Below are positions 3,351 through 29,776 of a DNA stretch of 64,000 bases, one piece after another; position 1 is the stretch's first letter, and each line of letters starts with the position of its first letter. The position numbers and the translations under genes are program-made. The notes under the pieces were generated by a model. It searched no databases. It saw only the letters and a program-made list of their open reading frames with translations, and was not told where the DNA came from. Location: the sequence record ON287372.1; one strand, given 5' to 3'.

Positions 3351-3390
3351 GGTTATATAGATGCCAAAAAAATTGGAAATGGGTATAATA
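3351..3390 (-). repeat. 40-bp early-promoter cassette, copy 1 (contains CTATATAAC at 3352-3360)
   Basis: ggttatatagatgccaaaaaaattggaaatgg(g/a)tataata; 39/40 identical to 27857-27896. Confidence 0.9.
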
Positions 3391-5799: not shown

Positions 5800-6342
5800 A
5801 TGAAGACAATTAAGGTGTTTAGTACACCCGTTCCCTTGATGGGATTCCTGCACTGGTGTTTCTTGTTCGTTGTATATCTACTGGCTTTGGTTGTTGCCGC
5901 AGTAGTGACTCCGTTCTTACCAATCTTTGCCACTAAGGATGCTCGTCTCCCTAAATGGCTGGACTGGTTCATGATGCCAGATAATGACTTAGATGGCGAC
6001 AATGGTTGGAAGACGGAACACACCACCTGGCGTAAGAACCTTCCGCCTCGCACAGCGCAATATGTTTGCCGAGTACTGTGGCTGTACCGTAACCCACTTT
6101 ATAACTTCAGTATTCGTTTCTTGGGCGCACCAAAGTCATCCGTCAAACCTACGATAAAAGGTCCGGCCTGGAATAATCAAACAGGGTTTTATAAAAACCA
6201 TTACTGGATGATTTATTACATGGGCCCGAGTTTCATCAAGGGTAAACGAATCAAGATATATCTCGGTTGGAAGCTCAAGACGGAGAATTTCGATAGCTAC
6301 CAGTTAGCGGTTCAATTCAACCCGTTTAAGAGCGATAAATAA
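5800..6342 (+). CDS. Conserved phage protein of the 'W-F-x-x-PDN-LDGD...W-x-x-RNP-Y-x-F' family, often near tail/lysis genes
   Basis: ORF track 5773..6342, start at MKTIK; N-terminal hydrophobic segment; motif recognised from memory. Confidence 0.7.
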   Translation: MKTIKVFSTPVPLMGFLHWCFLFVVYLLALVVAAVVTPFLPIFATKDARLPKWLDWFMMPDNDLDGDNGWKTEHTTWRKNLPPRTAQYVCRVLWLYRNPLYNFSIRFLGAPKSSVKPTIKGPAWNNQTGFYKNHYWMIYYMGPSFIKGKRIKIYLGWKLKTENFDSYQLAVQFNPFKSDK

Positions 6343-6361
6343 CTTAATCTGATAAGGCGAA

Positions 6362-7966
6362 GTGATTACAATGAATGAAGCTATCTCAATTTCAAAACTA
6401 CCGGAGCAGATGGATCTTTACGACACGGATTATCTCAGTGTTGTAGATACGGCCAACATGCAGACTGGTAAGATTACGGTCCAGACTCTCCGCGATCTCC
6501 TTAACTACAAAGGAGCCTTCTCTTCCATTTCTGATGGCATAGCTAAGACTAAAATTGGCCAAGTCTTCTACGTTTACAAACCAGAAGAAAATGGGGATAA
6601 TTTTAAAGTAAGTCCATTCCTGCGGTATGGAGCAGGCGCAGTCGAACTTAAAGACGAGCTTGGTAATGAGATATTCTTCTATATCTCCGATAAAATTATC
6701 AAGTCACTTATCGATCGCGTTAGTGTTCTCTACGATCAACAGTTCAAAGGTGAGACAGTAGGCGACTACGGTAAGTCTAAGGCATTGACTGAATGGAAAG
6801 GTGAACGCGGTCAATTCGATGTATGGCCGACATTGAGCCAGCCATTGAATGGCGCAGGTACTTCCTTTGGCGGTAGCGAATACCGTGCTTTCCTGATGGT
6901 TAATGGTAACGGCGAAATTGTTACCCAGCTTAGAGATAAGAATCGTCCAATCACACGCATCACGCATACGCCATATGTTGCCGACTCTGGCCGTTCCGGT
7001 CCCGATGGACAAATGTCACGCATTCTTAAGATTCCCGCCAACGGTAAGACAGATGTAAACAACGAATACGAAATGGAGTTCTCTACTGGGAACACCAATA
7101 AGCCAGTGGTAAAAATTCGACACCCATTGTTATTTGAAGGAGCGCCGGGTTGGGAAACGCGTACAATTACGGTTCCTGACGAAGCTAAATTCCGACCTAA
7201 CTCATCTATCTACTATCAGAAGATACCTACTGAAGCAACTTCCGGTACGATTATCCCTGGCGTAGATTATCGAGTTAAAATGGGCCGTTCTGCCACGGGT
7301 ACTGCCTTGCACGTCTATATCCGTAATCCGCAAGGTAACTTTATCTGTTCGCTGGTTAACTCCGGAATGAGCGCCTACCTCAGCTTTAAAGTTAAGGGTG
7401 ACACTAAGTACGGACTGTACAAAGTTTTTCCCAAAGCTGAGTATTACCTTAGTGGTGATGGCGCTAACATGACTCACCTGATGATCGATGGCTATACTAC
7501 TGATCCAGACGGGAACCCAGCTGATATTGCCAAGACTCCAGGAACGGCCCCTACAGATGCTGCCTGTGGTTTTGATAACATTACCCTCATCGCATTGCCT
7601 AAGGAAACTACGATGGTTACAGGCACCAAACTGACCGATCCTTTCAACAATGCTACGTTTAACGTTAACGATGCGTTTACGTTGACTCGTGCGGTGAAGG
7701 ATTCGATCCGTGCTCCAGGTCAGTACATCGATAAGACTGTAGTTACAGGTGTTAACTTCGACGCCAAAACAACTACGACTGAGGTTGTTAAGGTCGCTAA
7801 TCCAGGATTCGTCCTTGATTTGACATATAACCGTAACTATCGTTTCGGTGCCCCCGCATCGACTGTAACTACTATCATGTCGATGATTGTTCCTTACGAA
7901 GCCTGGGACTTGGTACATTTAAACTTCATGAATCCGGAAATAATGGGATACGGTAAAGATGCCTAA
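6362..7966 (+). CDS. Tail fibre/tailspike-associated virion protein (534 aa)
   Basis: N-terminus (ISKLPEQ...AFSSISDGIAKTKIGQVFYVY) parallels that of the 9600 tailspike; beta-rich body. Confidence 0.7.
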   Translation: MITMNEAISISKLPEQMDLYDTDYLSVVDTANMQTGKITVQTLRDLLNYKGAFSSISDGIAKTKIGQVFYVYKPEENGDNFKVSPFLRYGAGAVELKDELGNEIFFYISDKIIKSLIDRVSVLYDQQFKGETVGDYGKSKALTEWKGERGQFDVWPTLSQPLNGAGTSFGGSEYRAFLMVNGNGEIVTQLRDKNRPITRITHTPYVADSGRSGPDGQMSRILKIPANGKTDVNNEYEMEFSTGNTNKPVVKIRHPLLFEGAPGWETRTITVPDEAKFRPNSSIYYQKIPTEATSGTIIPGVDYRVKMGRSATGTALHVYIRNPQGNFICSLVNSGMSAYLSFKVKGDTKYGLYKVFPKAEYYLSGDGANMTHLMIDGYTTDPDGNPADIAKTPGTAPTDAACGFDNITLIALPKETTMVTGTKLTDPFNNATFNVNDAFTLTRAVKDSIRAPGQYIDKTVVTGVNFDAKTTTTEVVKVANPGFVLDLTYNRNYRFGAPASTVTTIMSMIVPYEAWDLVHLNFMNPEIMGYGKDA

Positions 7967-9515
7967 AATTTATTACATCGACCCCTCTTCCCGCACTAAC
8001 GGAGATGGTACAATTAACAAACCGTTCAACTCACTGAATGAAATTGTTAAGCAACCCTACCCGTATACTGCGTTGATTAAACGGGGAACAGTAGAGAGAG
8101 TCTCTATCACTCTACCTAGTATGACCGGACAAGTAGAGCGGACAACAATCGGCTCTTATGGTTCTGGTATTCGTCCGGTTCTTTTACCTAAGAGCGCAGG
8201 TAGTCCAATAATTACCTCAACACTAGTTAAACACCTGCTGATTACTGATATCGATTTGACGATCGATCTTTTCTCCTACACCTCAGAGAATGCGATCTTC
8301 CTTCGGGCAGACAGTGAAGGTGTTGGTAACAATGTTGCTGACGTAGGTATCACCAACGTCGACGTTATTTATCAGACTACCGTCGTGACTAAGACAAAGG
8401 CATTCTTTATCGATGCCATTGGCGGTGCTAATTTGACGTACAGTAATGATGACTTGTACATCAAGAATTGTAACGTCTACGGCGGACATTGGGCGGCGCA
8501 GATCAACGGAGGTGGTGCTTATTACAGCATTAACGGAGGCGATACCTATCGCGCTAAACGGATGTTAATCGATAACTGTTCCCACATCGATGGTGTTGGT
8601 GACTCATGGATGGCAATGCGTGCTAATGGTGAAGGTAAAGCTTGTATCACGAACTGTTATTCTAAGTCATCTGCTTACCGGACTGATACAAGCATCTATA
8701 CCGCGGCCATCTGGATGTATGGGTGCGAGAATACTGGTATAGAGTACTGCGAAGTTGCAGGGACACTACCTAACCGTTACGACAAGATGGGATTCGATAT
8801 CGACGGTAACAATAAAGATGTCTGGGTTCGTTACTGTTACAGCCACAACAACGCCGGCGGCTTCATCATGTTCGCCGACGCAGAAAGTAAAGGGAAGAAC
8901 TTCGCTTCATTAGCTGAGGCAGAACAATTCCTTATTACGGAGCAGCACGGTATTCAGAATTGCGTATTCGAATACTGTCTGTCCTACAATGATGGCGTTG
9001 CTCGTGGTGGATATGGCGGACGCTGGCCTAAGATAACGCTCGTAAGTAACCCGGTTAATTGCGCAGTTCGTAACTGTACGATCATCGATACGATCAGTAA
9101 GACCGATCTACACCTAGTCGAGCTGCTGGAGTACTACTACGAACCTATCTGGAAGAAATACCCGATGGTGATGGAGAACAACGTGTTCTACTTCAAGTAT
9201 CCTCGATACCGTGAAGGTAGCGGTCCTCCTGGGGAAATTGGTTATGGCAACTTCAAGAACATCATCTGGCGTAACAACATCTTCTGGACAGAGACAGGGG
9301 ATCCACGCGATTGGAACCCTCGGTCAGGTACGGTAGTTAACTCTATCTTTACCGATCCTAAATTGTCTTACTTAACGGATGTTCCTCCGAGTGGCCTGGA
9401 AGCTGCTAAGTTGATTAAGTTGTTGACAGGCTCTGCTGCACTCAATAGCGGTACTACCAACTCATTACCGGACATCCTTGGTAATCGTGGTAACAACATC
9501 GGCTGGTTGCAGTAA
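7959..9515 (+). CDS. Right-handed beta-helix (pectin-lyase-like) protein, candidate polysaccharide depolymerase (518 aa)
   Basis: YYIDPSSRTNGDGTINKPFNSL start motif; Asn/Cys/Gly beta-helix repeats (IEYCEV, FDIDGNN, VRYCYSHNNAGG); D-ILG-N...NIG C-terminal motif. Confidence 0.75.
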   Translation: MPKIYYIDPSSRTNGDGTINKPFNSLNEIVKQPYPYTALIKRGTVERVSITLPSMTGQVERTTIGSYGSGIRPVLLPKSAGSPIITSTLVKHLLITDIDLTIDLFSYTSENAIFLRADSEGVGNNVADVGITNVDVIYQTTVVTKTKAFFIDAIGGANLTYSNDDLYIKNCNVYGGHWAAQINGGGAYYSINGGDTYRAKRMLIDNCSHIDGVGDSWMAMRANGEGKACITNCYSKSSAYRTDTSIYTAAIWMYGCENTGIEYCEVAGTLPNRYDKMGFDIDGNNKDVWVRYCYSHNNAGGFIMFADAESKGKNFASLAEAEQFLITEQHGIQNCVFEYCLSYNDGVARGGYGGRWPKITLVSNPVNCAVRNCTIIDTISKTDLHLVELLEYYYEPIWKKYPMVMENNVFYFKYPRYREGSGPPGEIGYGNFKNIIWRNNIFWTETGDPRDWNPRSGTVVNSIFTDPKLSYLTDVPPSGLEAAKLIKLLTGSAALNSGTTNSLPDILGNRGNNIGWLQ

Positions 9516-9523
9516 TAAACAAC

Positions 9524-9549
9524 GAGTAGAGCGGGTAACCGCTCTACTC
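9524..9549 (+). terminator. Hairpin (terminator-like) followed by TATG
   Basis: gagtagagcgg-gtaa-ccgctctactc, then tattatg. Confidence 0.65.
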
Positions 9550-9599
9550 TATTATGCAAGTTCCTATGAATTCCAGCTTAAACTTAATAAGGTTGTAAC

Positions 9600-11777
9600 A
9601 TGGATAACGGACAAAAGATTTCCCAGTTACCCAAGTCTTCTACGCCGCAAGAAAGGGATTACTTTCCATTCAATACGGCGAACCAGGGTAGTATCGTCGA
9701 GACTTCGGTTTTGACCCTAAATGATTTACGTCTTCAGATGGATTACCGTACTGCTTTCGCTTCTCTGGAAGACGGGGTTAACAGTACTCAAGTTGGGGAC
9801 AAGTTCTTCGTTTACGAGAACGCAAGTAAGTTCTTTGTCGTTGAATACACCCGCAATGATGCAGGTGCAGTACCGACTCTGAATGAGCAACAAGCTATCA
9901 AACGTCTGATGACCCGCGAAGGGTTGCAGTACGCAAAGACTCACCGTACCTTACCATCGATTAGTTCTCTCCGTTCTACGAAACCGACCTACGATAATGA
10001 AGTTGTTTCGGTAGACAGTTATCGTACAGGTAAAGGGATTGGCGGCGGTAAATTTGCTTTCATCAAATCCGACAAGACGTCTGTAGATGATGGCGGCGCT
10101 GTGATCGTTGGTAACGACGGAAGTCGCTGGAAGCGTGTATTTGACGATGCAGGTACAATTAACCCAATCTATTGGGGTGCCGTTCCAAATGACGACACAA
10201 TCGATTCTGCGCCTGCATTCACCAACATGTCGAAGTGGAGCGAAGGCGTACCTGTAGTTGATGCAACTACTCGTGCTGCCCTGGGTAACGTCAAGATGGT
10301 AACTGCTCCAGGTCGTTACTACATTAAGACCCCGATAACGCTCCAGTGTAAATCTATCGACTACGACTTCAGCGGATCTATCTTAGATTGCCAGCAGTTG
10401 ACACCAGGTACCGCATCTGCACCAAACATCGCTATCAAATGGATGAACATGCGTGGTTACCCAATGGGAACTATGTCTTGCTTGAACCTACGTGCGTATG
10501 GTCCTGGACTGGACAAGTTCGTTGACTTCATGCACATGGATGATGCGACGGCTTATTACTGGGCAAACAACTCCATGAGTTTCATCAATGGCGGTTGTGA
10601 TCGGTTCGGGACTGGCTTCACTTATAGTTCCAATACCTACTACGTTAAGTTCTATAACTTCCAGTTCAACTATAATGACATCTGCTACACTAACAATGCA
10701 GCAATGACTAACGCCGGGGAACAAGTTCATTTTGTATCTTGCTTCTTCACTCAGTCTAATGTCATGATAAACATGAACCGTGGTCATACCGTGTTCGATA
10801 ACTGCAGTTTCGACTATGCGTACAAAACCTACGTTAAGATCGACTCTGGCTCTCCGAATCTTCGGTTCAATGATGGCTGGTTTGAAGGTGAGGGGCCGTA
10901 CACCAACGCCTTCATCTTTGGGGACACTGCATCAGCTAACGCTAAGTTCAGCGGGACTAACTTTATCTTCCGTGGTGCTAACACTAAAGCCTCGGCTAAC
11001 GTCTTCTACGTTGGCGACAGCAACCGTGTGGAGTTAGATGGGTGCTATCTGACCAACATGGGTGTTGAGTCTGATAATGCTGCTGTTACTGGTCTGGTAT
11101 CAGGTACGGGTATCTTCCGTATTAAGGACACTAAGTTCTTTAATAACATCCCAAACATGTCGAACATTATCCAACCAGATAACCCACTGGAAAACTATAT
11201 CCGACCAACTCTGTTCTCAGACAGTACTTTCTGGGCACATGAGCTTTGGATTCCTGAACCGGGCGGTACTGGTTGTGAAATTCGTAAGAGTCGTTTGGGT
11301 TGGGGTACCTCGACATCCACTAACTTCTCATTGCAGAAACTCAATGGCTACATTCAGATAGGTAGTAACACCGTACCTAAAGGCGGTAACTATAAACTCT
11401 GCATTGGCTCTCTGCCGTTGGTTGGAAATGGACCGGTAGTATTCAAGATTAAATGCGGGACTTACGCCGCTTCTCCTGGTCGTTGGAGATTCCAAATTGT
11501 CTATTGCGACGCAACCTTCTTTGGTGCCGATCAAGACAAATCTCCGATTATCCACAAAGAAGCTTTGGGTCCGTATTATGACTTACAGACCCGTGGAAAT
11601 GGTACTGCATTCCAAGAGTATTATGGCCCAACTCAGATCCCTGGGTTCTCTGGACAGAGTAAGTTTTTCGCTACTCCGCCACCATGGGCGACCCACGCTT
11701 ACCTCATGATTGACGTGACCAACCTGGCCATGAATATGGCTCATCGGATTACTGATATTTATATGAGGCAAATTTAA
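9600..11777 (+). CDS. Tailspike / capsule or EPS depolymerase (725 aa)
   Basis: Tailspike neck motif SISSLRST...VDSYRTGKGIGGGKF...DDGG...GSRWKR, then NPIYWGA-P-DD...DSAPAF and G-YYI beta-helix entry. Confidence 0.85.
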   Translation: MDNGQKISQLPKSSTPQERDYFPFNTANQGSIVETSVLTLNDLRLQMDYRTAFASLEDGVNSTQVGDKFFVYENASKFFVVEYTRNDAGAVPTLNEQQAIKRLMTREGLQYAKTHRTLPSISSLRSTKPTYDNEVVSVDSYRTGKGIGGGKFAFIKSDKTSVDDGGAVIVGNDGSRWKRVFDDAGTINPIYWGAVPNDDTIDSAPAFTNMSKWSEGVPVVDATTRAALGNVKMVTAPGRYYIKTPITLQCKSIDYDFSGSILDCQQLTPGTASAPNIAIKWMNMRGYPMGTMSCLNLRAYGPGLDKFVDFMHMDDATAYYWANNSMSFINGGCDRFGTGFTYSSNTYYVKFYNFQFNYNDICYTNNAAMTNAGEQVHFVSCFFTQSNVMINMNRGHTVFDNCSFDYAYKTYVKIDSGSPNLRFNDGWFEGEGPYTNAFIFGDTASANAKFSGTNFIFRGANTKASANVFYVGDSNRVELDGCYLTNMGVESDNAAVTGLVSGTGIFRIKDTKFFNNIPNMSNIIQPDNPLENYIRPTLFSDSTFWAHELWIPEPGGTGCEIRKSRLGWGTSTSTNFSLQKLNGYIQIGSNTVPKGGNYKLCIGSLPLVGNGPVVFKIKCGTYAASPGRWRFQIVYCDATFFGADQDKSPIIHKEALGPYYDLQTRGNGTAFQEYYGPTQIPGFSGQSKFFATPPPWATHAYLMIDVTNLAMNMAHRITDIYMRQI

Positions 11778-11783
11778 CAAATT

Positions 11784-11808
11784 GGCCGGGAAACCGGCCT
11801 ATTTTATT
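11784..11808 (+). terminator. Intrinsic terminator
   Basis: ggccgg-gaaa-ccggcc followed by tattttatt. Confidence 0.7.
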
Positions 11809-11833
11809 CGATCCCTAAGGACCAGAGACTACC

Positions 11834-13105
11834 ATGAAACACACGCGGAACATCATCCAGAACAAACGCGAAGAATTCTCGTGCCCTGCATTTGAATCAA
11901 TCGCAATCCCAGACTACGTAAACGACGCAGAGCTGGCGACTGAATTAGAAGAAACTCGCGTTGGTATCAGCGACCGCCTGGATGAGTCAGAGAGCCTGAC
12001 TGACCGCGCTGATCGCATGACCGACATGACCGAATTTGTCGAGCAGCAAGTTAACCCTGCTGAAAACACCCCAATCAACGAAGTAGCACTGATTGAACAA
12101 GTCACTGCTGCTAACCTGGACGGTACTGGTATCGATGTTGAAGAAGTGATGCCGTCTGTTGAATCCTACGTAGGCTCTACCGTTTCGGTAGAAGGCTTCA
12201 AGGACAAAATTAAGGCTCTAGTAGAAGCTGTCTCTGATCTGGTTGAATCGGCCAAAAAAGCCTTTACTGACTTTATGAAGGCAACCTTCACTCGCCTGGG
12301 CGCGCTGAAAAAACGCATTCAAGACATCGAAGGCAAACTGTCTTCTGCCGAATTCCCTGAAGTAGTGGACGTACCTAAAGGCCTGGCTAAACGTGCCCTG
12401 GTAGTAGGTAACGACACTATCGACAATCCCTCTGCCCTGTCCGCTGCACTGGAGTTATTCGTTAAGGATCTCCAGAGTAAAGGTATCGGCCTGTCTGAAA
12501 TGGTTGCCAACGACTACGATGATTTCGTAGAGATCGTTGTCCAAGCAGCTCGCAACTCCGGCCGCGGTAAAGACAAAGATCGCCTGCGTGCAGAACTGCG
12601 CACTAAGCTGACCAAACAGTTTAACACCTTCCAGAAAAAAGCAGCGGCCCTTTATAAAGGCAACGGCAAAGAGCTGGGTTCTTTCTACGTAGGTGCTAAC
12701 TTTGGTGAGCAAGCTGCTGATGAGAAAGATATCATTGGTCTGGCTCGTAAGACCGAAGTTGATATCGGCCCTGCTGCTAACGACCACAGCCGCCAAGTTC
12801 AGTTCAAAGGTTTGAACAAATCTTCTGCAACTGACATCCTGCGCAAGCTGAAAACTGTCTCTGGTAACCTGGCCACTTTCTCTAAGACCAATGCGATGGC
12901 TAACATCGACTGGGCTTCAGCAGAACTGTCCGGCGTGTTTACCTGGATCCTGGAAGGTGAAGATACCCGTTCCTTGTGGTCGCTGATCAACGCAGTGTCC
13001 CGCATGTACACTCGTCTGTACACCGGCCCGGTTTCTTCTTACACCACTCAGTTCTTCCGCGTAGCTAACGCTGAGCTGGACCTGATCGAGAAAGCAATCG
13101 GCTAA
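11834..13105 (+). CDS. phiKZ-like internal head (ejection) protein with cleavable propeptide (423 aa)
   Basis: Acidic N-terminal propeptide with A/S-X-E sites (AFE, ATE, SVESY, SVEGF) then KDKIKALVEAV helix, typical of phiKZ/SPN3US inner-head paralogues. Confidence 0.8.
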   Translation: MKHTRNIIQNKREEFSCPAFESIAIPDYVNDAELATELEETRVGISDRLDESESLTDRADRMTDMTEFVEQQVNPAENTPINEVALIEQVTAANLDGTGIDVEEVMPSVESYVGSTVSVEGFKDKIKALVEAVSDLVESAKKAFTDFMKATFTRLGALKKRIQDIEGKLSSAEFPEVVDVPKGLAKRALVVGNDTIDNPSALSAALELFVKDLQSKGIGLSEMVANDYDDFVEIVVQAARNSGRGKDKDRLRAELRTKLTKQFNTFQKKAAALYKGNGKELGSFYVGANFGEQAADEKDIIGLARKTEVDIGPAANDHSRQVQFKGLNKSSATDILRKLKTVSGNLATFSKTNAMANIDWASAELSGVFTWILEGEDTRSLWSLINAVSRMYTRLYTGPVSSYTTQFFRVANAELDLIEKAIG

Positions 13106-23351: not shown

Positions 23352-24407
23352 TTAGGGGTTAAAAAAGTGATCTGGAACTCTACCCTTTATTCCGTCACAG
23401 AACTTTTTAAGAGCCACCATAAATTCATCAGTCATGTAGGGAACGTCGATATCCTCTACGGTATAATAATCGAATGTACAGAGATATGCCCTACTTCTAA
23501 GCTTAGTGCATGCCCTAGTTATGGAGTTTTCCTTAAATCCATTTTTAGCCATGTGGGATATCTTGACTTTAAAACGCTGCCCTCTATTAAAACCAGGTAT
23601 ATCAGTATCTAAAGTAACAACCGCGGTTCTTCCAAACCCTAACTCCGATACATCTAAATCATCAGGTACAATTAGGTTAGGTTGACCCACTTCCTGATTT
23701 ATCCTCTCCCACCTAAACTTAAATCTAACTCCTTTTACTGAAGCGCTGGTGGGAATCTCGTACGGGAACCCACGGTCAGCGAGTTCCCTAAGTCTTCCAT
23801 ATATGGTAAACCCAGATTTAAATCTACCATGATCGTAAACTAATGTACCCTTGTAATAACCAACCGACTTCAAATTAGTCTCTACAGCATGACGTATGTT
23901 ACCTGCTGGGGTAGTCCATTCTAAGTTGGTCATGGAAGGGTTAGTTTTATCGCCATCAATATGGTTCACTTGCAAATCTTTAAATTCCACTTTTCTCAAT
24001 TCTAATGGCCTTGGGATAAAAGTAGAGGCAATTAAACGATGTAACAAGTAAGTTACTCCATCATGCTCCGCCTTATGGTAGTCTTCCGAGATAGCAATAG
24101 ATTTACTTCTGTCGATGGTGATTAATCCATTTGCCCTAGTTACGGATTCCGACACACCATTGCTAACACTAATTTTACAAATGTTCCCTTTTGTTGAGAT
24201 TAGCCAATCTCCCCATTGTTGGATTAAAGGGCCAGATTTACGTTTACTCCAGTAATATCTAGGGAATTCCCAAAATTCATATTCCGGGTACCTGGTCAAG
24301 AATAACCTTAGTTTCTCTACGATACACAACTCACCATTAGCGCCAAATTCTTTTTCAAATTTAGCAATGAAATCAGCATGGTTATCTTTACCATTAAAAA
24401 TGTTCAT
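23352..24407 (-). CDS. Free-standing HNH homing endonuclease (NUMOD4/HNH-like, 351 aa)
   Basis: YLLHRLIASTFIP...QVNHIDGDKTNPSMTNLEWTT..NIRHA; visibly more AT-rich than its neighbours. Confidence 0.9.
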   Translation of the reverse strand: MNIFNGKDNHADFIAKFEKEFGANGELCIVEKLRLFLTRYPEYEFWEFPRYYWSKRKSGPLIQQWGDWLISTKGNICKISVSNGVSESVTRANGLITIDRSKSIAISEDYHKAEHDGVTYLLHRLIASTFIPRPLELRKVEFKDLQVNHIDGDKTNPSMTNLEWTTPAGNIRHAVETNLKSVGYYKGTLVYDHGRFKSGFTIYGRLRELADRGFPYEIPTSASVKGVRFKFRWERINQEVGQPNLIVPDDLDVSELGFGRTAVVTLDTDIPGFNRGQRFKVKISHMAKNGFKENSITRACTKLRSRAYLCTFDYYTVEDIDVPYMTDEFMVALKKFCDGIKGRVPDHFFNP

Positions 24408-24467: not shown

Positions 24468-25257
24468 ACTTGTAAATGTCCAGGGCAGTAGAACAAAGTT
24501 TAGATCTTACGCAGTCATCATCAGTAAATTCAATGATAGGTACGTCTATAGATTTAGACTTAATTCGGTTAATCAGGTCAACTAGACCAGATTTAGTTCC
24601 TTTAGGAAGGTCGCATTGATTAGGGTCACCGTTTACGATGATAGTGACATTCTCCCCCACACGAGTTAAGAACAACCGCATTTGGTTAACAGTTACATTT
24701 TGCGCCTCATCAAGGATAACGATGGCGTCCTCAAAAGTCCGTCCGCGCATAAATGCAAAGGGAGCTATTTCGACCTTTCCAATTTCTTCACGTAAACAAT
24801 ACTTCAGCCAACCGTCACCCATACGTTTACGTAAGATGTCATAAACTGGCCTGAAGTAAGGTGCAAATTTTTCATTGGCGTCGCCCGGAAGGAAGCCCAT
24901 TTCCTCTTCTGCAGTAACCATAGGTCGAGTTACAATAATTTTCTCGTACCTTTTTTCAGAAAGTTGTTCTACTGCATACGCACTGGCTAAGAAGGTTTTT
25001 CCAGAGCCGGCCGAGCCTGTAGCTACGATGAGGTCAGATAGTTCTAATGCATTAAGGTACAGTGCCTGATTATCATTACGAGGCTCTATTGGCCGAGTGT
25101 CCTTTTTACACTTAGCCATACCTATACTTTCGTGACTAGCAAATCCGTTGTCGTTGGTTGGGAACTCAACGAGATTGCTTTCAAAACCACGGTTAGCTTG
25201 TCTCTTTGCTTTACGAACATCGCGACGTTTAACTGTCGCGGCTTTTTGACGTCCCAT
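24466..25257 (-). CDS. phoH: PhoH-family ATPase
   Basis: GSAGSGKTFLA, TRP, GFLPG, FMRGRTF, DEAQN, GD..Q.DL motifs. Confidence 0.95.
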   Translation of the reverse strand: MGRQKAATVKRRDVRKAKRQANRGFESNLVEFPTNDNGFASHESIGMAKCKKDTRPIEPRNDNQALYLNALELSDLIVATGSAGSGKTFLASAYAVEQLSEKRYEKIIVTRPMVTAEEEMGFLPGDANEKFAPYFRPVYDILRKRMGDGWLKYCLREEIGKVEIAPFAFMRGRTFEDAIVILDEAQNVTVNQMRLFLTRVGENVTIIVNGDPNQCDLPKGTKSGLVDLINRIKSKSIDVPIIEFTDDDCVRSKLCSTALDIYK

Positions 25258-25385
25258 CTATACCACCTTATCTGGAGGATTAAGAGGTTTCTGAAACGGG
25301 GGATTCAGAAACGTTTTGCGTTCATAAAAAATAAAAAGAATAGCGTAAATAAATCCTCCTACCCGAATGGATAGGAGGGGATGGA

Positions 25386-25751
25386 TTATTCGATGACTTT
25401 CCACGCATCGCGCTTGGCGTACTTGTGATAGAACTGCTTACTAGCACCGTTACGCGACATGCCGATAATGAGATTGCCGTTTTCGGTGGTGATCTTCGCC
25501 ATCAGTACGAAACCAGCGTCACACTGGAAGAAGCTGACAACGTAGATCAGGTTATCCTTATCGATGCCGTTGTCATTATACAGCAGCTCGCAACGAGAGA
25601 CTTTGTTAGTGCGCAGGTTAGTTACACGGGCCGCGGTGTCGCCAACAACGAAGTCGTACTCAGGAGCATCGCTTACGCCAATCAACGCTGCGTTAGCGTT
25701 CAAAGAGAAGAATGACAGTACGACGATGAGAGTTGAAAGAATGAGTTTCAC
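25386..25751 (-). CDS. Secreted small protein, paralogue family A (121 aa)
   Basis: Signal peptide ...NANA; C-x6-NGID-x12-C. Confidence 0.85.
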   Translation of the reverse strand: MKLILSTLIVVLSFFSLNANAALIGVSDAPEYDFVVGDTAARVTNLRTNKVSRCELLYNDNGIDKDNLIYVVSFFQCDAGFVLMAKITTENGNLIIGMSRNGASKQFYHKYAKRDAWKVIE

Positions 25752-25763
25752 GATACTGGTTCC

Positions 25764-26117
25764 TTATGGAATGAAGATGTATTCTTCGCGTGTCCACGAA
25801 GCGGAGTAGGTTGCCTTACCAGCTTTGTTGATTACGTAGATGGTAAGTACTTTGTTTTTGGCGGTTATCCTGGCAGCGATTGTAGTGTCATCACCACAAA
25901 GGTAGATGTCGCCGTAATAACGGTTACCGTCTTTGTCAATGCCACTCGGTTGACTGTATTCCTTGCAGTAAGTGCTCTTACCGGTTTTTACGTTATAGGC
26001 AACAGCAGCACCTTCAACGAAGTCGAAAGCGTACTTACCGGGTTCCATGACGCGCAGAGTGGAAGCACCAGCGCTTACGGAGAAAATGCAAAGTAATGCT
26101 AAGATAATCTTTTTCAC
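25764..26117 (-). CDS. Secreted small protein, family A (117 aa, GTG start)
   Basis: Signal peptide ...SAGA; C-x6-SGID-x12-C; AAGGA RBS. Confidence 0.85.
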   Translation of the reverse strand: MKKIILALLCIFSVSAGASTLRVMEPGKYAFDFVEGAAVAYNVKTGKSTYCKEYSQPSGIDKDGNRYYGDIYLCGDDTTIAARITAKNKVLTIYVINKAGKATYSASWTREEYIFIP

Positions 26118-26127
26118 AGGGGTTTCC

Positions 26128-26550
26128 TTATTTAACTTTAACCCAGCCACTGACAGGGAACGGCTCGCTATAGATGATTTTATCGTTGCGGTCGTAGAAT
26201 GTGACCCAGAGTACTTTGTCGTCTACCAGCAGTTTACCCGCAACCCACATCTTTTCAGGGCACTGGTAAGAAGTAGCGGTATAGACCTTACCTACATCGT
26301 CGATACCGTTGAAGTTATCGTGGAACTTACAACGAATGACTTTACCGGTTTTGTTGGAATAGAAGTCCAGGCGGTTATCAACCAGAGCAATGCGGTTATT
26401 GCGATTGTCTTTCAAGGTATATCCAGCAGCTGCATGTGCAGTCGATGGAGTCAGTAAAGGGAAGTCGTTGAACGGTGAAGTCAACAGAGAGAAACCGAAC
26501 GGTACGAGCATTACGCCCAGGGCAGCTACGATATAAGTTAAGAATTTCAT
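26128..26550 (-). CDS. Secreted small protein, family A (140 aa)
   Basis: Extended signal ...TAHA; C-x6-NGID-x12-C. Confidence 0.85.
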   Translation of the reverse strand: MKFLTYIVAALGVMLVPFGFSLLTSPFNDFPLLTPSTAHAAAGYTLKDNRNNRIALVDNRLDFYSNKTGKVIRCKFHDNFNGIDDVGKVYTATSYQCPEKMWVAGKLLVDDKVLWVTFYDRNDKIIYSEPFPVSGWVKVK

Positions 26551-26556
26551 GTTTGA

Positions 26557-26934
26557 TTACTCCTCGATTACGTTTACGCGCCAGGATTTAAGTGGCAGCT
26601 CAGTTGCCCACTCTACTTCGGAAGGAGTGGACGCAGTCATAATCCCAACCTGAACGACGGATGTAGTTGGGTAGAAAGCAACAGACAGAAGGCGAGAGTC
26701 AGTGCAGATGAATTCTGCATGCATGTAATTACCCAAGCGCTTGTCGGTTCCCTGGAATTTCTCTTGGAAACGGCAGATGACAGTTTCTTCTTTTCCTTTG
26801 GTAACCGTGGCGATGTTCTCAGCCAACAGGAAACGATAACCGTCTTCACCACGAACTTGAATAACGGTAGCATCGGCATTAGTACTACCGAGGATAGCGA
26901 AAACTGCGATAAAGATGATAGCCTTGATAGACAT
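26557..26934 (-). CDS. Secreted small protein, family A (125 aa)
   Basis: Signal ...NADA; C-x6-QGTD-x12-C. Confidence 0.85.
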   Translation of the reverse strand: MSIKAIIFIAVFAILGSTNADATVIQVRGEDGYRFLLAENIATVTKGKEETVICRFQEKFQGTDKRLGNYMHAEFICTDSRLLSVAFYPTTSVVQVGIMTASTPSEVEWATELPLKSWRVNVIEE

Positions 26935-26959
26935 GTGGAATACTCCCGTTTAGTGAATG

Positions 26960-26985
26960 AAAAATAAATGGGGACCGAAGTCCCC
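26960..26985 (-). terminator. Intrinsic terminator, UUCG loop
   Basis: ggggac-cgaa-gtcccc with a U-tract on minus. Confidence 0.7.
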
Positions 26986-26993
26986 TGGTGTTG

Positions 26994-27446
26994 TTAGCCG
27001 ATTTTACACTGAGGTATTTGACACCCAGGCATGGCGGAAGTGACATAATGGAGTGCATCGTTGTGATGCTTCCAAGGGGCTGTAAAGCCGTACCATGACG
27101 CGCATGCAACGATCAGAAGGTTACCAAGTACTTCGCCCTGGGCAATCTCACCAAATGCGATCACGCGGGTTCCTAGCTCGGTTTCCAGCTTAATGCACTC
27201 TGGCAGATCGAGGTAGGTGGTGAAGTCATATTCGTAAGCTACGACCACCGCAAACTTCTCATCTTTGATATTGAAATATTTGATGGTGTTACGGTCAGCC
27301 TTAGCCAGTTCGAATGCTTCACCAAACTCATTACCGAGAATGCCTTTAACAATAGCAGTCTGGAATGGAGAATCCGACAGGGCAATGAATGCGTGGCCTT
27401 TAACGTCTGACTTTACGAATTTCTTAAGATGTTGAATGGAGTTCAT
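26994..27446 (-). CDS. Hypothetical protein (150 aa)
   Basis: ORF track; AAGGA RBS. Confidence 0.8.
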   Translation of the reverse strand: MNSIQHLKKFVKSDVKGHAFIALSDSPFQTAIVKGILGNEFGEAFELAKADRNTIKYFNIKDEKFAVVVAYEYDFTTYLDLPECIKLETELGTRVIAFGEIAQGEVLGNLLIVACASWYGFTAPWKHHNDALHYVTSAMPGCQIPQCKIG

Positions 27447-27498
27447 GATTATTTCCTTATTAGAGAATGAGTATAAAGAGTGGATTGGATTTAGTTTT

Positions 27499-27801
27499 TT
27501 ATTTAACTTCGTAAACGTCGATGTAAGTTGGTTTATCGGTTACGGCATCAAACATTGCAACAGTTACGTTGTTGCCATCGATGGACTTACGGAGATACAA
27601 GTGATCACCGTTAGAACATTTGTAGCCTGAAGTTCTTTCTTTTACGAAGACGAACTTACAGGTCAGATTGTCTATGGATACGTAGTCACCTACTATGGTA
27701 ACAACTTCATTCTTATCAGACACTAGAACCATATCGGCACTAGCTTGAGCTGAGAAGAAAGAAGTAGCGATTAAAGCCAGGGAGATGATTAATTTTTTCA
27801 T
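27499..27801 (-). CDS. Secreted small protein, divergent/shortened family A-like (100 aa)
   Basis: Signal ...AQASA; Cys pair only 13 residues apart; own early promoter. Confidence 0.8.
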   Translation of the reverse strand: MKKLIISLALIATSFFSAQASADMVLVSDKNEVVTIVGDYVSIDNLTCKFVFVKERTSGYKCSNGDHLYLRKSIDGNNVTVAMFDAVTDKPTYIDVYEVK

Positions 27802-27856
27802 TATAGTTTCCTTTTTAAGTCGGTAGTTTTAGGGCTTTTCTATCAGCCTTCACCGC

Positions 27857-27896
27857 GGTTATATAGATGCCAAAAAAATTGGAAATGGATATAATA
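27857..27896 (-). repeat. 40-bp early-promoter cassette, copy 2 (CTATATAAC at 27858-27866)
   Basis: 39/40 identical to 3351-3390. Confidence 0.9.
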
Positions 27897-27899
27897 GCA

Positions 27900-27927
27900 C
27901 TCTTCTGGGGAATTAACCCCAGAAGAG
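27900..27927 (-). terminator. Terminator-like hairpin (AATTAA-loop family)
   Basis: ctcttctgggg-aattaa-ccccagaagag. Confidence 0.7.
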
Positions 27928-27938
27928 CAACTATGACG

Positions 27939-28208
27939 TTAGCGTTTAAATACAGTACGAAAATCGTTCTTGAACCCATGTACTGCAATAACTAACATCC
28001 CTTGCGGAATAAACAAGTAAGAGAAGAAGTTATTCACAGCCAACCCATGAAACTTATCGTAGGCCCAGATAAGAATAACGGGGAGGAACCGAGCTGCGAG
28101 AATATACGGGAAATATTCAAACGGAGCCGTCATCAACAAGACGACGTATAACGCAAACAGCAGACTCACGAACCAGCTAATGAGAATGCTTTTCTTACTG
28201 TTGGTCAT
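27939..28208 (-). CDS. Membrane protein (89 aa)
   Basis: ORF track; hydrophobic. Confidence 0.75.
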   Translation of the reverse strand: MTNSKKSILISWFVSLLFALYVVLLMTAPFEYFPYILAARFLPVILIWAYDKFHGLAVNNFFSYLFIPQGMLVIAVHGFKNDFRTVFKR

Positions 28209-28212
28209 TTAA

Positions 28213-28611
28213 CTACCCTAAAAGAGTTTCGGAAATGTTACCCAATGGATTTCGGTGTACTCGAACTTTACGACGTAACCCGGAACGAGCCTCGCCATAA
28301 TCCAGCGTCCCACGTACGATGAGCAGTGCAGGTCGCTTTTCTTTCTTCGCCTCGACCAAGAACTTATTCACCTTCATGGAATCCATCATGGCACGGAATG
28401 GATCAATTCCTTTTCGGGTAGTGCAATAGAACACCGACCGATATTGACCCTTGATATCTCTCCACGGATGACTCATTGCGAAAAGAATATCCTTTATGTC
28501 AGGAATCGGATAATACCCCATCAAAACCCTCAAGTTAACATCCTTGTCAACTTGAATAGCTTGGATGTTCTCTAGATCCATAAAGACTCTACTGGCGAAC
28601 ATCGAGCACAT
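28213..28611 (-). CDS. Hypothetical protein (up to 132 aa)
   Basis: ORF track; start uncertain. Confidence 0.7.
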   Translation of the reverse strand: MCSMFASRVFMDLENIQAIQVDKDVNLRVLMGYYPIPDIKDILFAMSHPWRDIKGQYRSVFYCTTRKGIDPFRAMMDSMKVNKFLVEAKKEKRPALLIVRGTLDYGEARSGLRRKVRVHRNPLGNISETLLG

Positions 28612-28957
28612 CCTTAGCAGACCAAATCCCTTCGTAGATTACCTTACCCTCTCGGTCTTTATAAACCAAGTCAAACTGATCAGGTTCGTAGAAGTAACTG
28701 AGGTCTACGTAAGTGGTCGAGGAACGAGGCAATGACCAGCACACGTACTTAAGCGTATAGAACCGCCCCATATCCTCATCTACGCCGTTTACTCGCGTAT
28801 CATAACCGCAACTACGGGAAATGTTTACCGTGCGAACATGAAGCGTAGAGCCCGTAAGAATCCCTTCGAACAAATACCCATCCTTGAACACCACTGGATC
28901 TTTAGCGAACGATCCGAATGATGTCAACATCAATAACGCAGCTAACCACTTAAACAT
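28589..28957 (-). CDS. Secreted small protein, family A (122 aa)
   Basis: Signal ...GSFA; C-x6-NGVD-x12-C; GGAGG RBS. Confidence 0.85.
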   Translation of the reverse strand: MFKWLAALLMLTSFGSFAKDPVVFKDGYLFEGILTGSTLHVRTVNISRSCGYDTRVNGVDEDMGRFYTLKYVCWSLPRSSTTYVDLSYFYEPDQFDLVYKDREGKVIYEGIWSAKDVLDVRQ

Positions 28958-28959
28958 GA

Positions 28960-29346
28960 TTAACCTCCTTTCATTTCCTCTGCTTTGAAGTAAGCCAGGA
29001 TGTGCGGGTGAATCTCTTTAACTGCAGCCAACATCCCGTTGACTTTATCGGAGATATTCAGATCACGGAAAGCATCGTAGTTCTCGTTACTGAGTTCTAC
29101 GGTGTTATCCATGGTTTTCAAAGCCCCAGCGTGAACCAGCTTCAGACCCACATTGCGGAAGATCTGATACTCCAACACCGGCCCAGTCAGTACCAGTACC
29201 CCAGAGAAATCTGGACTGCTACGTTCCATGACGTAAGATGGGTTGAAGCCGAATACGGCTGAGATCTGATACCCGTCTCCCAGTTGCTCACGGATACGCT
29301 TCTCAGACTTTTCACTTAACTTAACTTCGTTGATTTCATACTGCAT
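28960..29346 (-). CDS. Hypothetical protein (128 aa)
   Basis: ORF track 28960..29457; start trimmed to MQYEI, overlapping the upstream stop. Confidence 0.75.
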   Translation of the reverse strand: MQYEINEVKLSEKSEKRIREQLGDGYQISAVFGFNPSYVMERSSPDFSGVLVLTGPVLEYQIFRNVGLKLVHAGALKTMDNTVELSNENYDAFRDLNISDKVNGMLAAVKEIHPHILAYFKAEEMKGG

Positions 29347-29776
29347 CGTTTTCGTATCCCAGTGGCAGTTGCAGAGTAACTTTCCCTTTAGCCGTGTAAC
29401 CACGGTTCTTGGAGAATGTCGCGTTGAGGTAAGTGAAGCCTTTCTCTTCTTCATCAATGAAGCGAGAGAAGTGTATTACGGTCGCAGCATGCTGATGGAT
29501 AGCAGCAGTAACGAATCCGTTGGTGTTTTCTTCATTGAAGAAGTAAACTTTAGCTTCTCCACCAAATGCCAGCTCCTTAAGATCGTCTTCCGTCAACGTA
29601 CTCAGATAGCTACGAGAAGAGGCGATCTGTTCAGGTGGGATGAACTCCACCAAGTTAATAGTAGAACCAAACCATTCTTTCAGCTCGGCAAGTGAAACTG
29701 AACCGTCAGTGACGATAAAGGAGCGTGGGTCTTTCTTAATAAAACTTGCTACCATGTCAAACAGTGGGGAGAACAT
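29336..29776 (-). CDS. Hypothetical protein (146 aa)
   Basis: ORF track; coupled to the AAA gene. Confidence 0.75.
   Translation of the reverse strand: MFSPLFDMVASFIKKDPRSFIVTDGSVSLAELKEWFGSTINLVEFIPPEQIASSRSYLSTLTEDDLKELAFGGEAKVYFFNEENTNGFVTAAIHQHAATVIHFSRFIDEEEKGFTYLNATFSKNRGYTAKGKVTLQLPLGYENDAV

Follow-up and report, generated by a model that had tools for sequence, protein, structure and literature searches.

Proteins of the MliC/PliC/ACP group are defined by an eight-strand barrel, a disulfide that links β1 to β8, an SxSGAxY motif on loop 4 and a YxxxTKG motif on β6, and the loop that MliC/PliC and ACP insert into lysozyme is loop 4, between β4 and β5 (PMC5507604). In Neisseria ACP the barrel is split into two four-strand sheets and is accompanied by a Cys38-Cys121 (β1-β8) disulfide and a long loop 4, and the structure 3F6Z shows the complex of P. 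aeruginosa MliC with lysozyme (PMC5507604). The Spackle protein of phage T4 (gp61.3) is reported to be made early and to inhibit the gp5 tail lysozyme in the periplasm, with a function in superinfection exclusion (PMC7677548, PMC7650644). The present analysis concerns six small genes, here called Paralogs A to F, of Serratia phage vB_SmaS-Totoro (ON287372.1, 278,767 bp), assigned by its taxonomy record to Moabitevirus in the Chimalliviridae, the nucleus-forming jumbo phages. They lie in a window of 64,000 nucleotides, the whole stretch that was analysed, in which a position equals the ON287372.1 position minus 62,000 and positions 25000-29500 match the Totoro sequence at 100% identity, and all six are annotated in the record as "hypothetical protein". 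The evidence strongly indicates that they form one family of exported β-barrel proteins, for which a periplasmic binding or inhibitory function is tentatively proposed.

The original prediction, made from the letters of the window, had described four tandem genes, a fifth and a shortened sixth as diversifying secreted mini-proteins. All six open reading frames (ORFs) are found on the minus strand where it had placed them, A to E with the lengths it gave (Table 1), and each of these five contains the predicted C-x6-[NSQ]G[IVT]D-x12-C motif, with 22 residues between the two Cys, and the signal-peptide ends that had been quoted for it. In A to E the Cys frame a protruding acidic loop, x-G-[IV]-D-[DKN]-x-G, and the mature domains of A to F (about 78-104 aa, isoelectric points (pI) 4.9-9.1) contain exactly two Cys each. 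Leave-one-out hidden Markov models (HMMs) built on the mature parts only recovered each of A to E among the 456 ORFs of the window (E = 3e-4 to 3e-15), so their similarity is not a signal-peptide artefact, and a family HMM run over the window matched exactly these six ORFs and no others. In the alignment of 34 family sequences (A6), both Cys are invariant (34/34), the 22-residue spacing is kept in 26, and the β4-β5 loop residues G and D are present in 23 and 28 sequences, respectively.

A to E match PHROG 5474 (A 1.5e-5, B 1.7e-9, C 2.9e-7, D 3.2e-4, Paralog E 2.3e-3; 70-100 profile positions covered), an entry with no assigned function that is also matched by 29 of 31 collected relatives. The statement of the original prediction that no described family could be recognized is thus to be corrected, as the family was already catalogued, with unknown function. 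Paralog F is more distant, since its match to PHROG 5474 extends over the signal peptide only (E = 0.027), and its mature part was not significant with a simple family HMM against the same 456 ORFs (E = 0.25). Profile-profile comparison with hhalign, in which F was represented together with its three positional orthologues, placed it in the family at 98.2% over the full length and at 95.3% (E = 2e-8) without the signal peptides, with both Cys aligned, in agreement with the claim that the shortened gene belongs to the family. The loop between the Cys is short by nine residues in the F proteins of Totoro and Moabite, and the F-type proteins of two metagenomic relatives keep the long loop. Together, it is strongly indicated that A to F are members of one family, PHROG 5474, and that A to E are true paralogs. 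Scans of Pfam, NCBIfam and PADLOC with the six proteins and the 31 relatives gave chance-level matches only. The relatives include D-type proteins (P0008, P0022). A 1284-aa protein with 15 matched stretches (P0010) was considered as a tandem-domain relative and rejected, being an MBG-repeat adhesin that lacks the Cys pair and scores through the sum of weak repeat matches. Another sequence (P0033, 137 aa, on a 1.2 kb contig) has about its first 84 residues in common with the chromosomal P0021, followed by an unrelated hydrophobic C-terminus, and may be an altered or broken copy.

In a rule-based check, A to F each display one or two K/R in the n-region, an uncharged hydrophobic core of 15-26 residues and small residues at -3 and -1, features found in none of the non-family neighbours, and the n-h-c layout is retained in all 34 relatives. 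These features bear out the export predicted for the proteins, and strongly indicate that A to F are Sec-exported, as far as can be judged from sequence. The N-terminal segment of Paralog C is longer (41 residues), consisting of a 21-residue hydrophobic helix and an 18-residue Pro/Ser/Thr-rich linker ending in A-H-A-A-A, and may act either as a long signal peptide or as an inner-membrane anchor that is not released. For the bacterial clade of the family, a lipoprotein reading based on a Cys in the h-region was considered and rejected, because position -1 is occupied by F, L or I and not by G/A/S, and an A-x-A-type site follows.

AlphaFold2 (AF2) models were obtained for B (predicted local distance difference test score, pLDDT, 87.4) and for mature F (pLDDT 91.5). 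The B model is all-β, with residues 1-19 disordered, in line with expectation for a signal peptide. The F model has eight strands, which map one-to-one onto eight strands of B through alignment A6, and B has two further short strands, one a mini-strand within the loop and the other at the C-terminus (8 + 2 short strands). The folds predicted for these two members thus agree in strand order, and the two confident models, with the conserved Cys, are in accord with the β-sheet proteins with a Cys pair that had been predicted. The Cys are located in β4 and at the end of β5 (residues 51/74 of B, 26/40 of mature F), with the G-[IV]-D motif at the tip of this β4-β5 hairpin, and because they lie on opposite sides of the hairpin, they would be expected to form a cross-strand disulfide in the periplasm. 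The models strongly indicate that the mature domains are small up-and-down, calycin/lipocalin-like eight-strand β-barrels.

Foldseek searches of the PDB gave no significant match for either model, none falling below E = 0.03. The nearest neighbours (TM about 0.45-0.58, non-significant) are lipocalins, fatty-acid-binding proteins (FABPs), ZinT/YodA, Tp0751, the cathepsin C exclusion domain, Cap15, BtaiB and the protease inhibitor potempin E, which belong to the calycin-like class of small barrels, in which ligand binding and enzyme inhibition are common. In BFVD, Foldseek retrieved only uncharacterised phage members of the family (from Moabite, Klebsiella Menlow, Escherichia Mt1B1_P17 and nieznany), together with the Moabite label. 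This label, "putative lysozyme inhibitor", is the GenBank product of Moabite gp145 and gp148, and derives from a weak HHpred match to Neisseria ACP (PDB 5MY7). The lysozyme-inhibitor idea of the original prediction coincides with an annotation that already existed, and none of the functions it had suggested is established; the Moabite genome announcement contains nothing further on gp145/gp148, and the HHpred match to 5MY7 was not reproduced with HMMER against the PDB.

The paralogs differ in their divergence from related phages. Identity to the Moabite proteins is 68% for A (gp143), 50% for Paralog E (gp152), 36% for C (gp145), 36% for F (gp148) and 29% at best for B, and D has no clear orthologue (32% over 57 aa), compared with 68% for the neighbouring phoH, 79% for the 150-aa gene next to the array (Moabite gp147) and 71% for the AAA+ ATPase. 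In a comparison with a relative at intermediate distance (L015/L016), identity is 38-50% for B, C, D and F and 57-88% for most neighbours, and a few other genes are equally diverged; Paralog E is 84% identical to its counterpart in L015. B, C, D and F are thus among the most diverged genes between related phages (25-50%, neighbours mostly 50-90%), and A and Paralog E are conserved to the same extent as their neighbours. Gene-wide ratios of non-synonymous to synonymous substitution (dN/dS) of A to E against close relatives are 0.05-0.12 (A 0.10, B 0.05, Paralog E 0.12), in the same range as neighbouring genes, showing that A to E are under purifying selection; pervasive positive selection is rejected at the gene-wide level. 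The diversification that had been claimed is therefore seen in the low identities of B, C, D and F, and does not extend to A and Paralog E or take the form of ongoing hypermutation. Low dN/dS despite divergence and copy-number variation indicates old, individually maintained functional paralogs with high long-distance turnover.

A scan of the window for σ70 promoters gave no more sites than shuffled sequence does, which is unsurprising in a phage that has RNA polymerases of its own. De novo inspection of intergenic regions identified the motif CTATAT[ATC]AC (CTATATHAC), which occurs 10 times in the window, always on the minus strand, compared with 1.65 expected. It usually follows a T-rich stretch, often lies just downstream of a terminator hairpin, and resembles the early-promoter consensus of the phiKZ group (PMC7058600, Table 2 therein). 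The sites near 3352 and 27858 have a much longer, near-identical block in common. The copy just upstream of F fits the claim that this gene has its own early promoter, and its position is kept in four related loci (Moabite, L003, L004 and L016), where it precedes the first gene of the homologous unit by 65-75 nt. From this motif onwards, the order is F, the 150-aa gene, a short hairpin, D-C-B-A and a closing hairpin, and annotated terminators are found in Moabite at positions matching these two hairpins. F through D-C-B-A probably form one early unit, in which the array would be reached by read-through past the first hairpin. Paralog E is separate from this unit and belongs to the preceding operon, which is tightly packed and lies downstream of the AAA+ ATPase gene, 1.7 kb upstream of the A-D tandem.

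Table 1. Genes, hairpins, promoter-like motifs and neighbouring features of the Totoro window (window positions).
Feature	Position	Strand	Description
Paralog A	25386-25751	(-)	121 aa; GTG start; signal peptide ends A-N-A; C-x6-NGID-x12-C
Paralog B	25764-26117	(-)	117 aa; C-x6-SGID-x12-C; AF2-modelled; longest ORF reaches 26150 (128 aa from the most upstream GTG)
Paralog C	26128-26550	(-)	140 aa
Paralog D	26557-26934	(-)	125 aa; C-x6-QGTD-x12-C
Paralog E	28589-28957	(-)	122 aa; signal peptide ends S-F-A; C-x6-NGVD-x12-C; 5-residue insert after the second Cys
Paralog F	27499-27801	(-)	100 aa; divergent; both Cys; no G[IV]D loop; 13 residues between Cys
150-aa non-family gene	26994-27446	(-)	constantly between F-type gene and array
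Terminator-like hairpin	25355-25378	(-)	closes D-C-B-A unit just before phoH; 10-bp stem, 6 GC pairs, T-rich tail
Terminator-like hairpin	26970-26985	(-)	short; between 150-aa gene and D
Strong terminator-like hairpin	27898-27929	(-)	13-bp stem, 7 GC pairs; ends the operon containing Paralog E, just before F promoter
Promoter-like motif CTATATAAC	27858-27866	(-)	head of F unit; resembles phiKZ-type early promoter
CTATAT[ATC]AC sites	2434, 3352, 5746, 14940, 23324, 27858, 33975, 42868, 48008, 58254	(-)	
HNH endonuclease gene	23352-24407	(-)	351 aa; between phoH and next conserved gene
Small membrane protein gene	27939-28208	(-)	89 aa; several hydrophobic helices, no Cys; between the operon of Paralog E and F promoter
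Plus-strand island	5800-13105	(+)	within minus-strand block; annotations pectin lyase, 'amylovoran biosynthesis protein'

The six genes are part of a long minus-strand block with thymidine kinase, phoH, a RelA/SpoT-like gene, dihydrofolate reductase (DHFR), thymidylate synthase and the AAA+ ATPase, which is an early or middle gene block distinct from the structural genes. The 150-aa gene keeps its position in L003, L004 and L016, and has no Pfam or PHROG match and no signal-peptide features. The 89-aa membrane protein is 46% identical to Moabite gp150, with no Pfam or PHROG family match, and its location beside exported proteins suggests that it could share an envelope-directed function. In Moabite (gp149, L002 9696-10214) and in the ERR13731096 relative (L016 79-597), a 172-aa gene is present between the promoter motif and the F-type gene; Totoro has no such gene, and there the motif directly precedes F. 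The HNH endonuclease gene has no match in the syntenic Moabite locus, and for this reason is probably a Totoro-specific homing-endonuclease insertion. Products of the plus-strand island may be tail-spike or depolymerase-type proteins.

Beyond Totoro, a five-sequence profile retrieved with HMMER 32 cluster representatives among 1.84 billion proteins, one of them spurious (the MBG-repeat adhesin); the family is wider than this, since the profile is narrow and other searches found more. From a library holding the Totoro proteins only the five known copies were returned, in a search that very divergent F-like copies could escape. Among related phages, the tandem block consists of four genes in Totoro and Moabite, three in L003 and two in L004. 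The syntenic Moabite locus shares the Totoro layout, with four tandem genes (gp143-146) between two terminators beside phoH, and with gp148 and gp152 as the genes of the F and E type, respectively. One to four members lie directly upstream of phoH in the jumbo phages L003 and L004 (Moabitevirus-like), L012 and L013 (Klebsiella KpLz-2_45-like), L017 and L018. This placement beside phoH, within early or middle gene blocks, thus recurs in at least four lineages of jumbo phages that have diverged from one another. In a 285-nt gap between two array genes of L004, a short ORF (2587-2751, +) weakly matches the family HMM (E = 0.0066), and is possibly what is left of a copy that was lost. In Ackermannviridae, a single copy is present in 99 phage records, from phages of Klebsiella, Dickeya, Salmonella, Escherichia, Shigella, Serratia, Enterobacter and Yersinia, with about 50% identity between genera; in phage Magnus it lies about 1.8 kb from an Rz-like spanin gene.

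The bacterial and prophage members form a separate clade of lone genes. In a lambda-like prophage (L008), the member lies on the opposite strand beside terminase genes, with a secreted 254-aa protein of the LprI/DUF1311 family (PF07007, 28.3 bits, cut-off 22) in its flank (8928-9692, -) and a methyl-directed restriction enzyme (PADLOC mREase_II, E = 2e-62) nearby (11258-12055, -). In an Escherichia-like chromosome (L005, 6900-12000), it is part of an island that follows thiM and includes a GmrSD/HNH protein and an integrase, and the GmrSD-integrase part of this island is found in E. coli genomes at about 81% identity and 51% query coverage. One bacterial contig has a member beside a CARF protein and a nuclease-type effector, and another has a member in a resolvase/MerR element. 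A P0021-based locus search of GTDB species representatives found nothing.

The combination of export signals, barrel, Cys pair, acidic loop, paralog-specific surfaces, purifying selection, early or middle gene context, and carriage as cargo near defence genes suggests that PHROG 5474 proteins may be periplasmic binders or inhibitors that guard the cell envelope during infection or lysogeny, with peptidoglycan-cleaving enzymes as the leading class of target. This is the interpretation tentatively preferred here, at somewhat less than an even chance, and the general claim of a binder or inhibitor is firmer than the specific link to peptidoglycan hydrolases. In such a mechanism, A to F would act in soluble form in the periplasm, C possibly tethered to the membrane, and a conserved scaffold and loop combined with differing surfaces (as reflected in the spread of mature pI) would give each paralog a separate target. 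The targets could be tail-associated lysins of superinfecting phages, as in the case of T4 Spackle and gp5, or host autolysins. On this view, the array of the jumbo phages would serve as a multi-specificity panel, and the lone copies in prophages and defence islands as single-specificity exclusion factors. Also in favour are the nearest Foldseek neighbours, which are small barrels binding ligands or proteins (non-significant), and the place of the conserved loop between β4 and β5, which corresponds in number to the loop inserted into lysozyme by MliC/PliC and ACP. The top PDB match of A6 (3f6z_B) and the Moabite HHpred matches of gp145 and gp148 are weak leads in the same direction.

Several observations weigh against this interpretation. 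The conserved loop cannot be a universal warhead, because F lacks it. Low dN/dS and 50% identity across Ackermannviridae genera favour a conserved, possibly host, target over a fast arms race. D-C-B-A has no recognizable promoter motif of its own, including in the region after the hairpin 26970-26985, and the association with defence islands is drawn from four bacterial or prophage loci, three of which show it. Nor did any characterised inhibitor give a significant match, whether by sequence or by structure: MliC/PliC/ACP proteins, including 5MY7, are absent from the best 50 Foldseek matches of the B and F models, the Cys pair lies on β4 and β5 rather than on β1 and β8, and the best PDB match of the 34-sequence profile A6, the MliC chain 3f6z_B (E = 0.76, 48 residues, non-significant), aligns the second half of the family domain with the first half of MliC, in a shifted register and over half of the domain only.

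These comparisons bear equally on the possibility that the proteins are true distant members of MliC/PliC/ACP, which would inhibit c-type lysozyme through loop 4 in the classical manner. The Moabite HHpred note, the fact that an MliC chain is the top PDB match of A6, and the likeness to 3F6Z, 3OE3, 4ML7 and 5MY7 in export, size (about 100 aa), a compatible eight-strand barrel (here a predicted one), a single (here predicted) disulfide and a conserved β4-β5 loop speak for such a relationship. However, the defining β1-β8 disulfide is absent, loop 4 of the family carries x-G-[IV]-D in place of SxSGAxY, and neither TKG nor YxxxTKG is present in the family alignment. None of 31 members matched Pfam MliC even at E <= 10, and none of the HMMER searches of the PDB, for which four profiles and two single proteins were used, gave a significant match, the profiles A2 and A3 yielding no match at all. 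A phage of an environmental or opportunistic bacterium also has no obvious need to block an animal lysozyme during its lytic cycle, and membership is judged very unlikely. Another candidate role is that of immunity-like proteins, which would neutralise periplasm-acting toxins of neighbouring bacteria, such as type VI secretion system (T6SS) effectors or bacteriocins, and keep the infected or lysogenic cell alive. Orphan-immunity arrays of bacteria consist of tandem, diverged, small, periplasmic genes, the layout seen here, and a T6SS immunity protein (BtaiB, 9jdd_B) is among the matches of the F model (TMq 0.56); members are also carried on mobile islands and in prophage cargo positions, once with a DUF1311/LprI-domain neighbour. 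Yet the similarity to BtaiB does not reach significance (E = 0.31), none of the members examined has a cognate effector gene beside it, and strain-specific immunity genes would not be expected to persist as one syntenic gene throughout Ackermannviridae, which together leave this role rather improbable.

A function in the phage's own cycle, whether in binding small molecules or lipids or in regulating envelope remodelling or lysis timing through conserved host periplasmic components, would account for the lipocalin/FABP/calycin class of the nearest structures, the strong purifying selection, the conserved synteny with phoH and nucleotide-metabolism genes in jumbo phages, and the retention of a single copy across Ackermannviridae genera, close to the spanin gene in Magnus. 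It is nonetheless considered unlikely, since barrels of 78-100 aa would usually lack the room for a lipocalin-type cavity, one housekeeping task does not readily account for six diverged copies, and the lone cargo copies beside bacterial and prophage defence genes are left unexplained. That the proteins are virion or assembly components, or that their hydrophobic N-termini are not export signals and they never reach the periplasm, has in its favour that the signal peptides were judged by rule-based features alone; it appears highly improbable given that the n-h-c layout and exactly one conserved Cys pair are found throughout the 34 relatives, that the N-terminal 19 residues of B are unstructured in the AF2 model, and that the genes reside with thymidine kinase, phoH, DHFR and thymidylate synthase and not with structural genes.

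Very little is understood of what large virulent phages do at the cell envelope, and nucleus-forming jumbo phages have been studied almost wholly for cytoplasmic events. A family of exported, predicted disulfide-stapled proteins, conserved from Ackermannviridae to Chimalliviridae, forming arrays in jumbo phages and carried as cargo near defence genes, is a tractable candidate for a mechanism of periplasmic exclusion or inhibition that would be new. The stronger claim, that PHROG 5474 is a new and widespread class of phage-encoded proteins for exclusion or inhibition in the periplasm, with a structure unlike that of Spackle or of MliC/PliC/ACP, a multi-specificity panel of up to six early-promoter paralogs in nucleus-forming jumbo phages and single copies in Ackermannviridae, prophages and bacterial defence islands, is doubtful at present; if true, it would add an envelope-level layer to competition between phages. 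The sole existing functional label, the "putative lysozyme inhibitor" of Moabite, is hereby corrected and qualified, and even if the function is mundane, a defined structural family with motif and anatomy replaces dozens of "hypothetical protein" entries.

Among described systems, T4 Spackle provides the best functional analogy for the proposed mechanism, being likewise a small signal-peptide protein of a virulent phage, produced early and located in the periplasm. The two are not homologous: Spackle is encoded by a single gene and has a helical structure, whereas the Totoro genes form an array and the PHROG 5474 models are all-β, and the Spackle family (phrog_1586) matched only the signal peptide of F (residues 1-32, E = 0.06) and none of A to E. 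BtaiB (9jdd_B), potempin E (8ehd) and the cathepsin C exclusion domain (2djg), all of which bind an enzyme, resemble the F model in size and barrel class (TMq 0.47-0.58), but with E >= 0.3 and identity <= 11%, and they do not have the sequence motifs or the Cys pair in common with it. That PHROG 5474 belongs to MliC/PliC/ACP is not established, and a functional analogy may hold, in which a conserved β4-β5 loop is presented on a small periplasmic barrel. The PHROG 5474 entry itself agrees with A to E in length and layout, and holds no description of function, structure or motif. The family is thus a catalogued, uncharacterised one that differs in defining features from every characterised inhibitor family.

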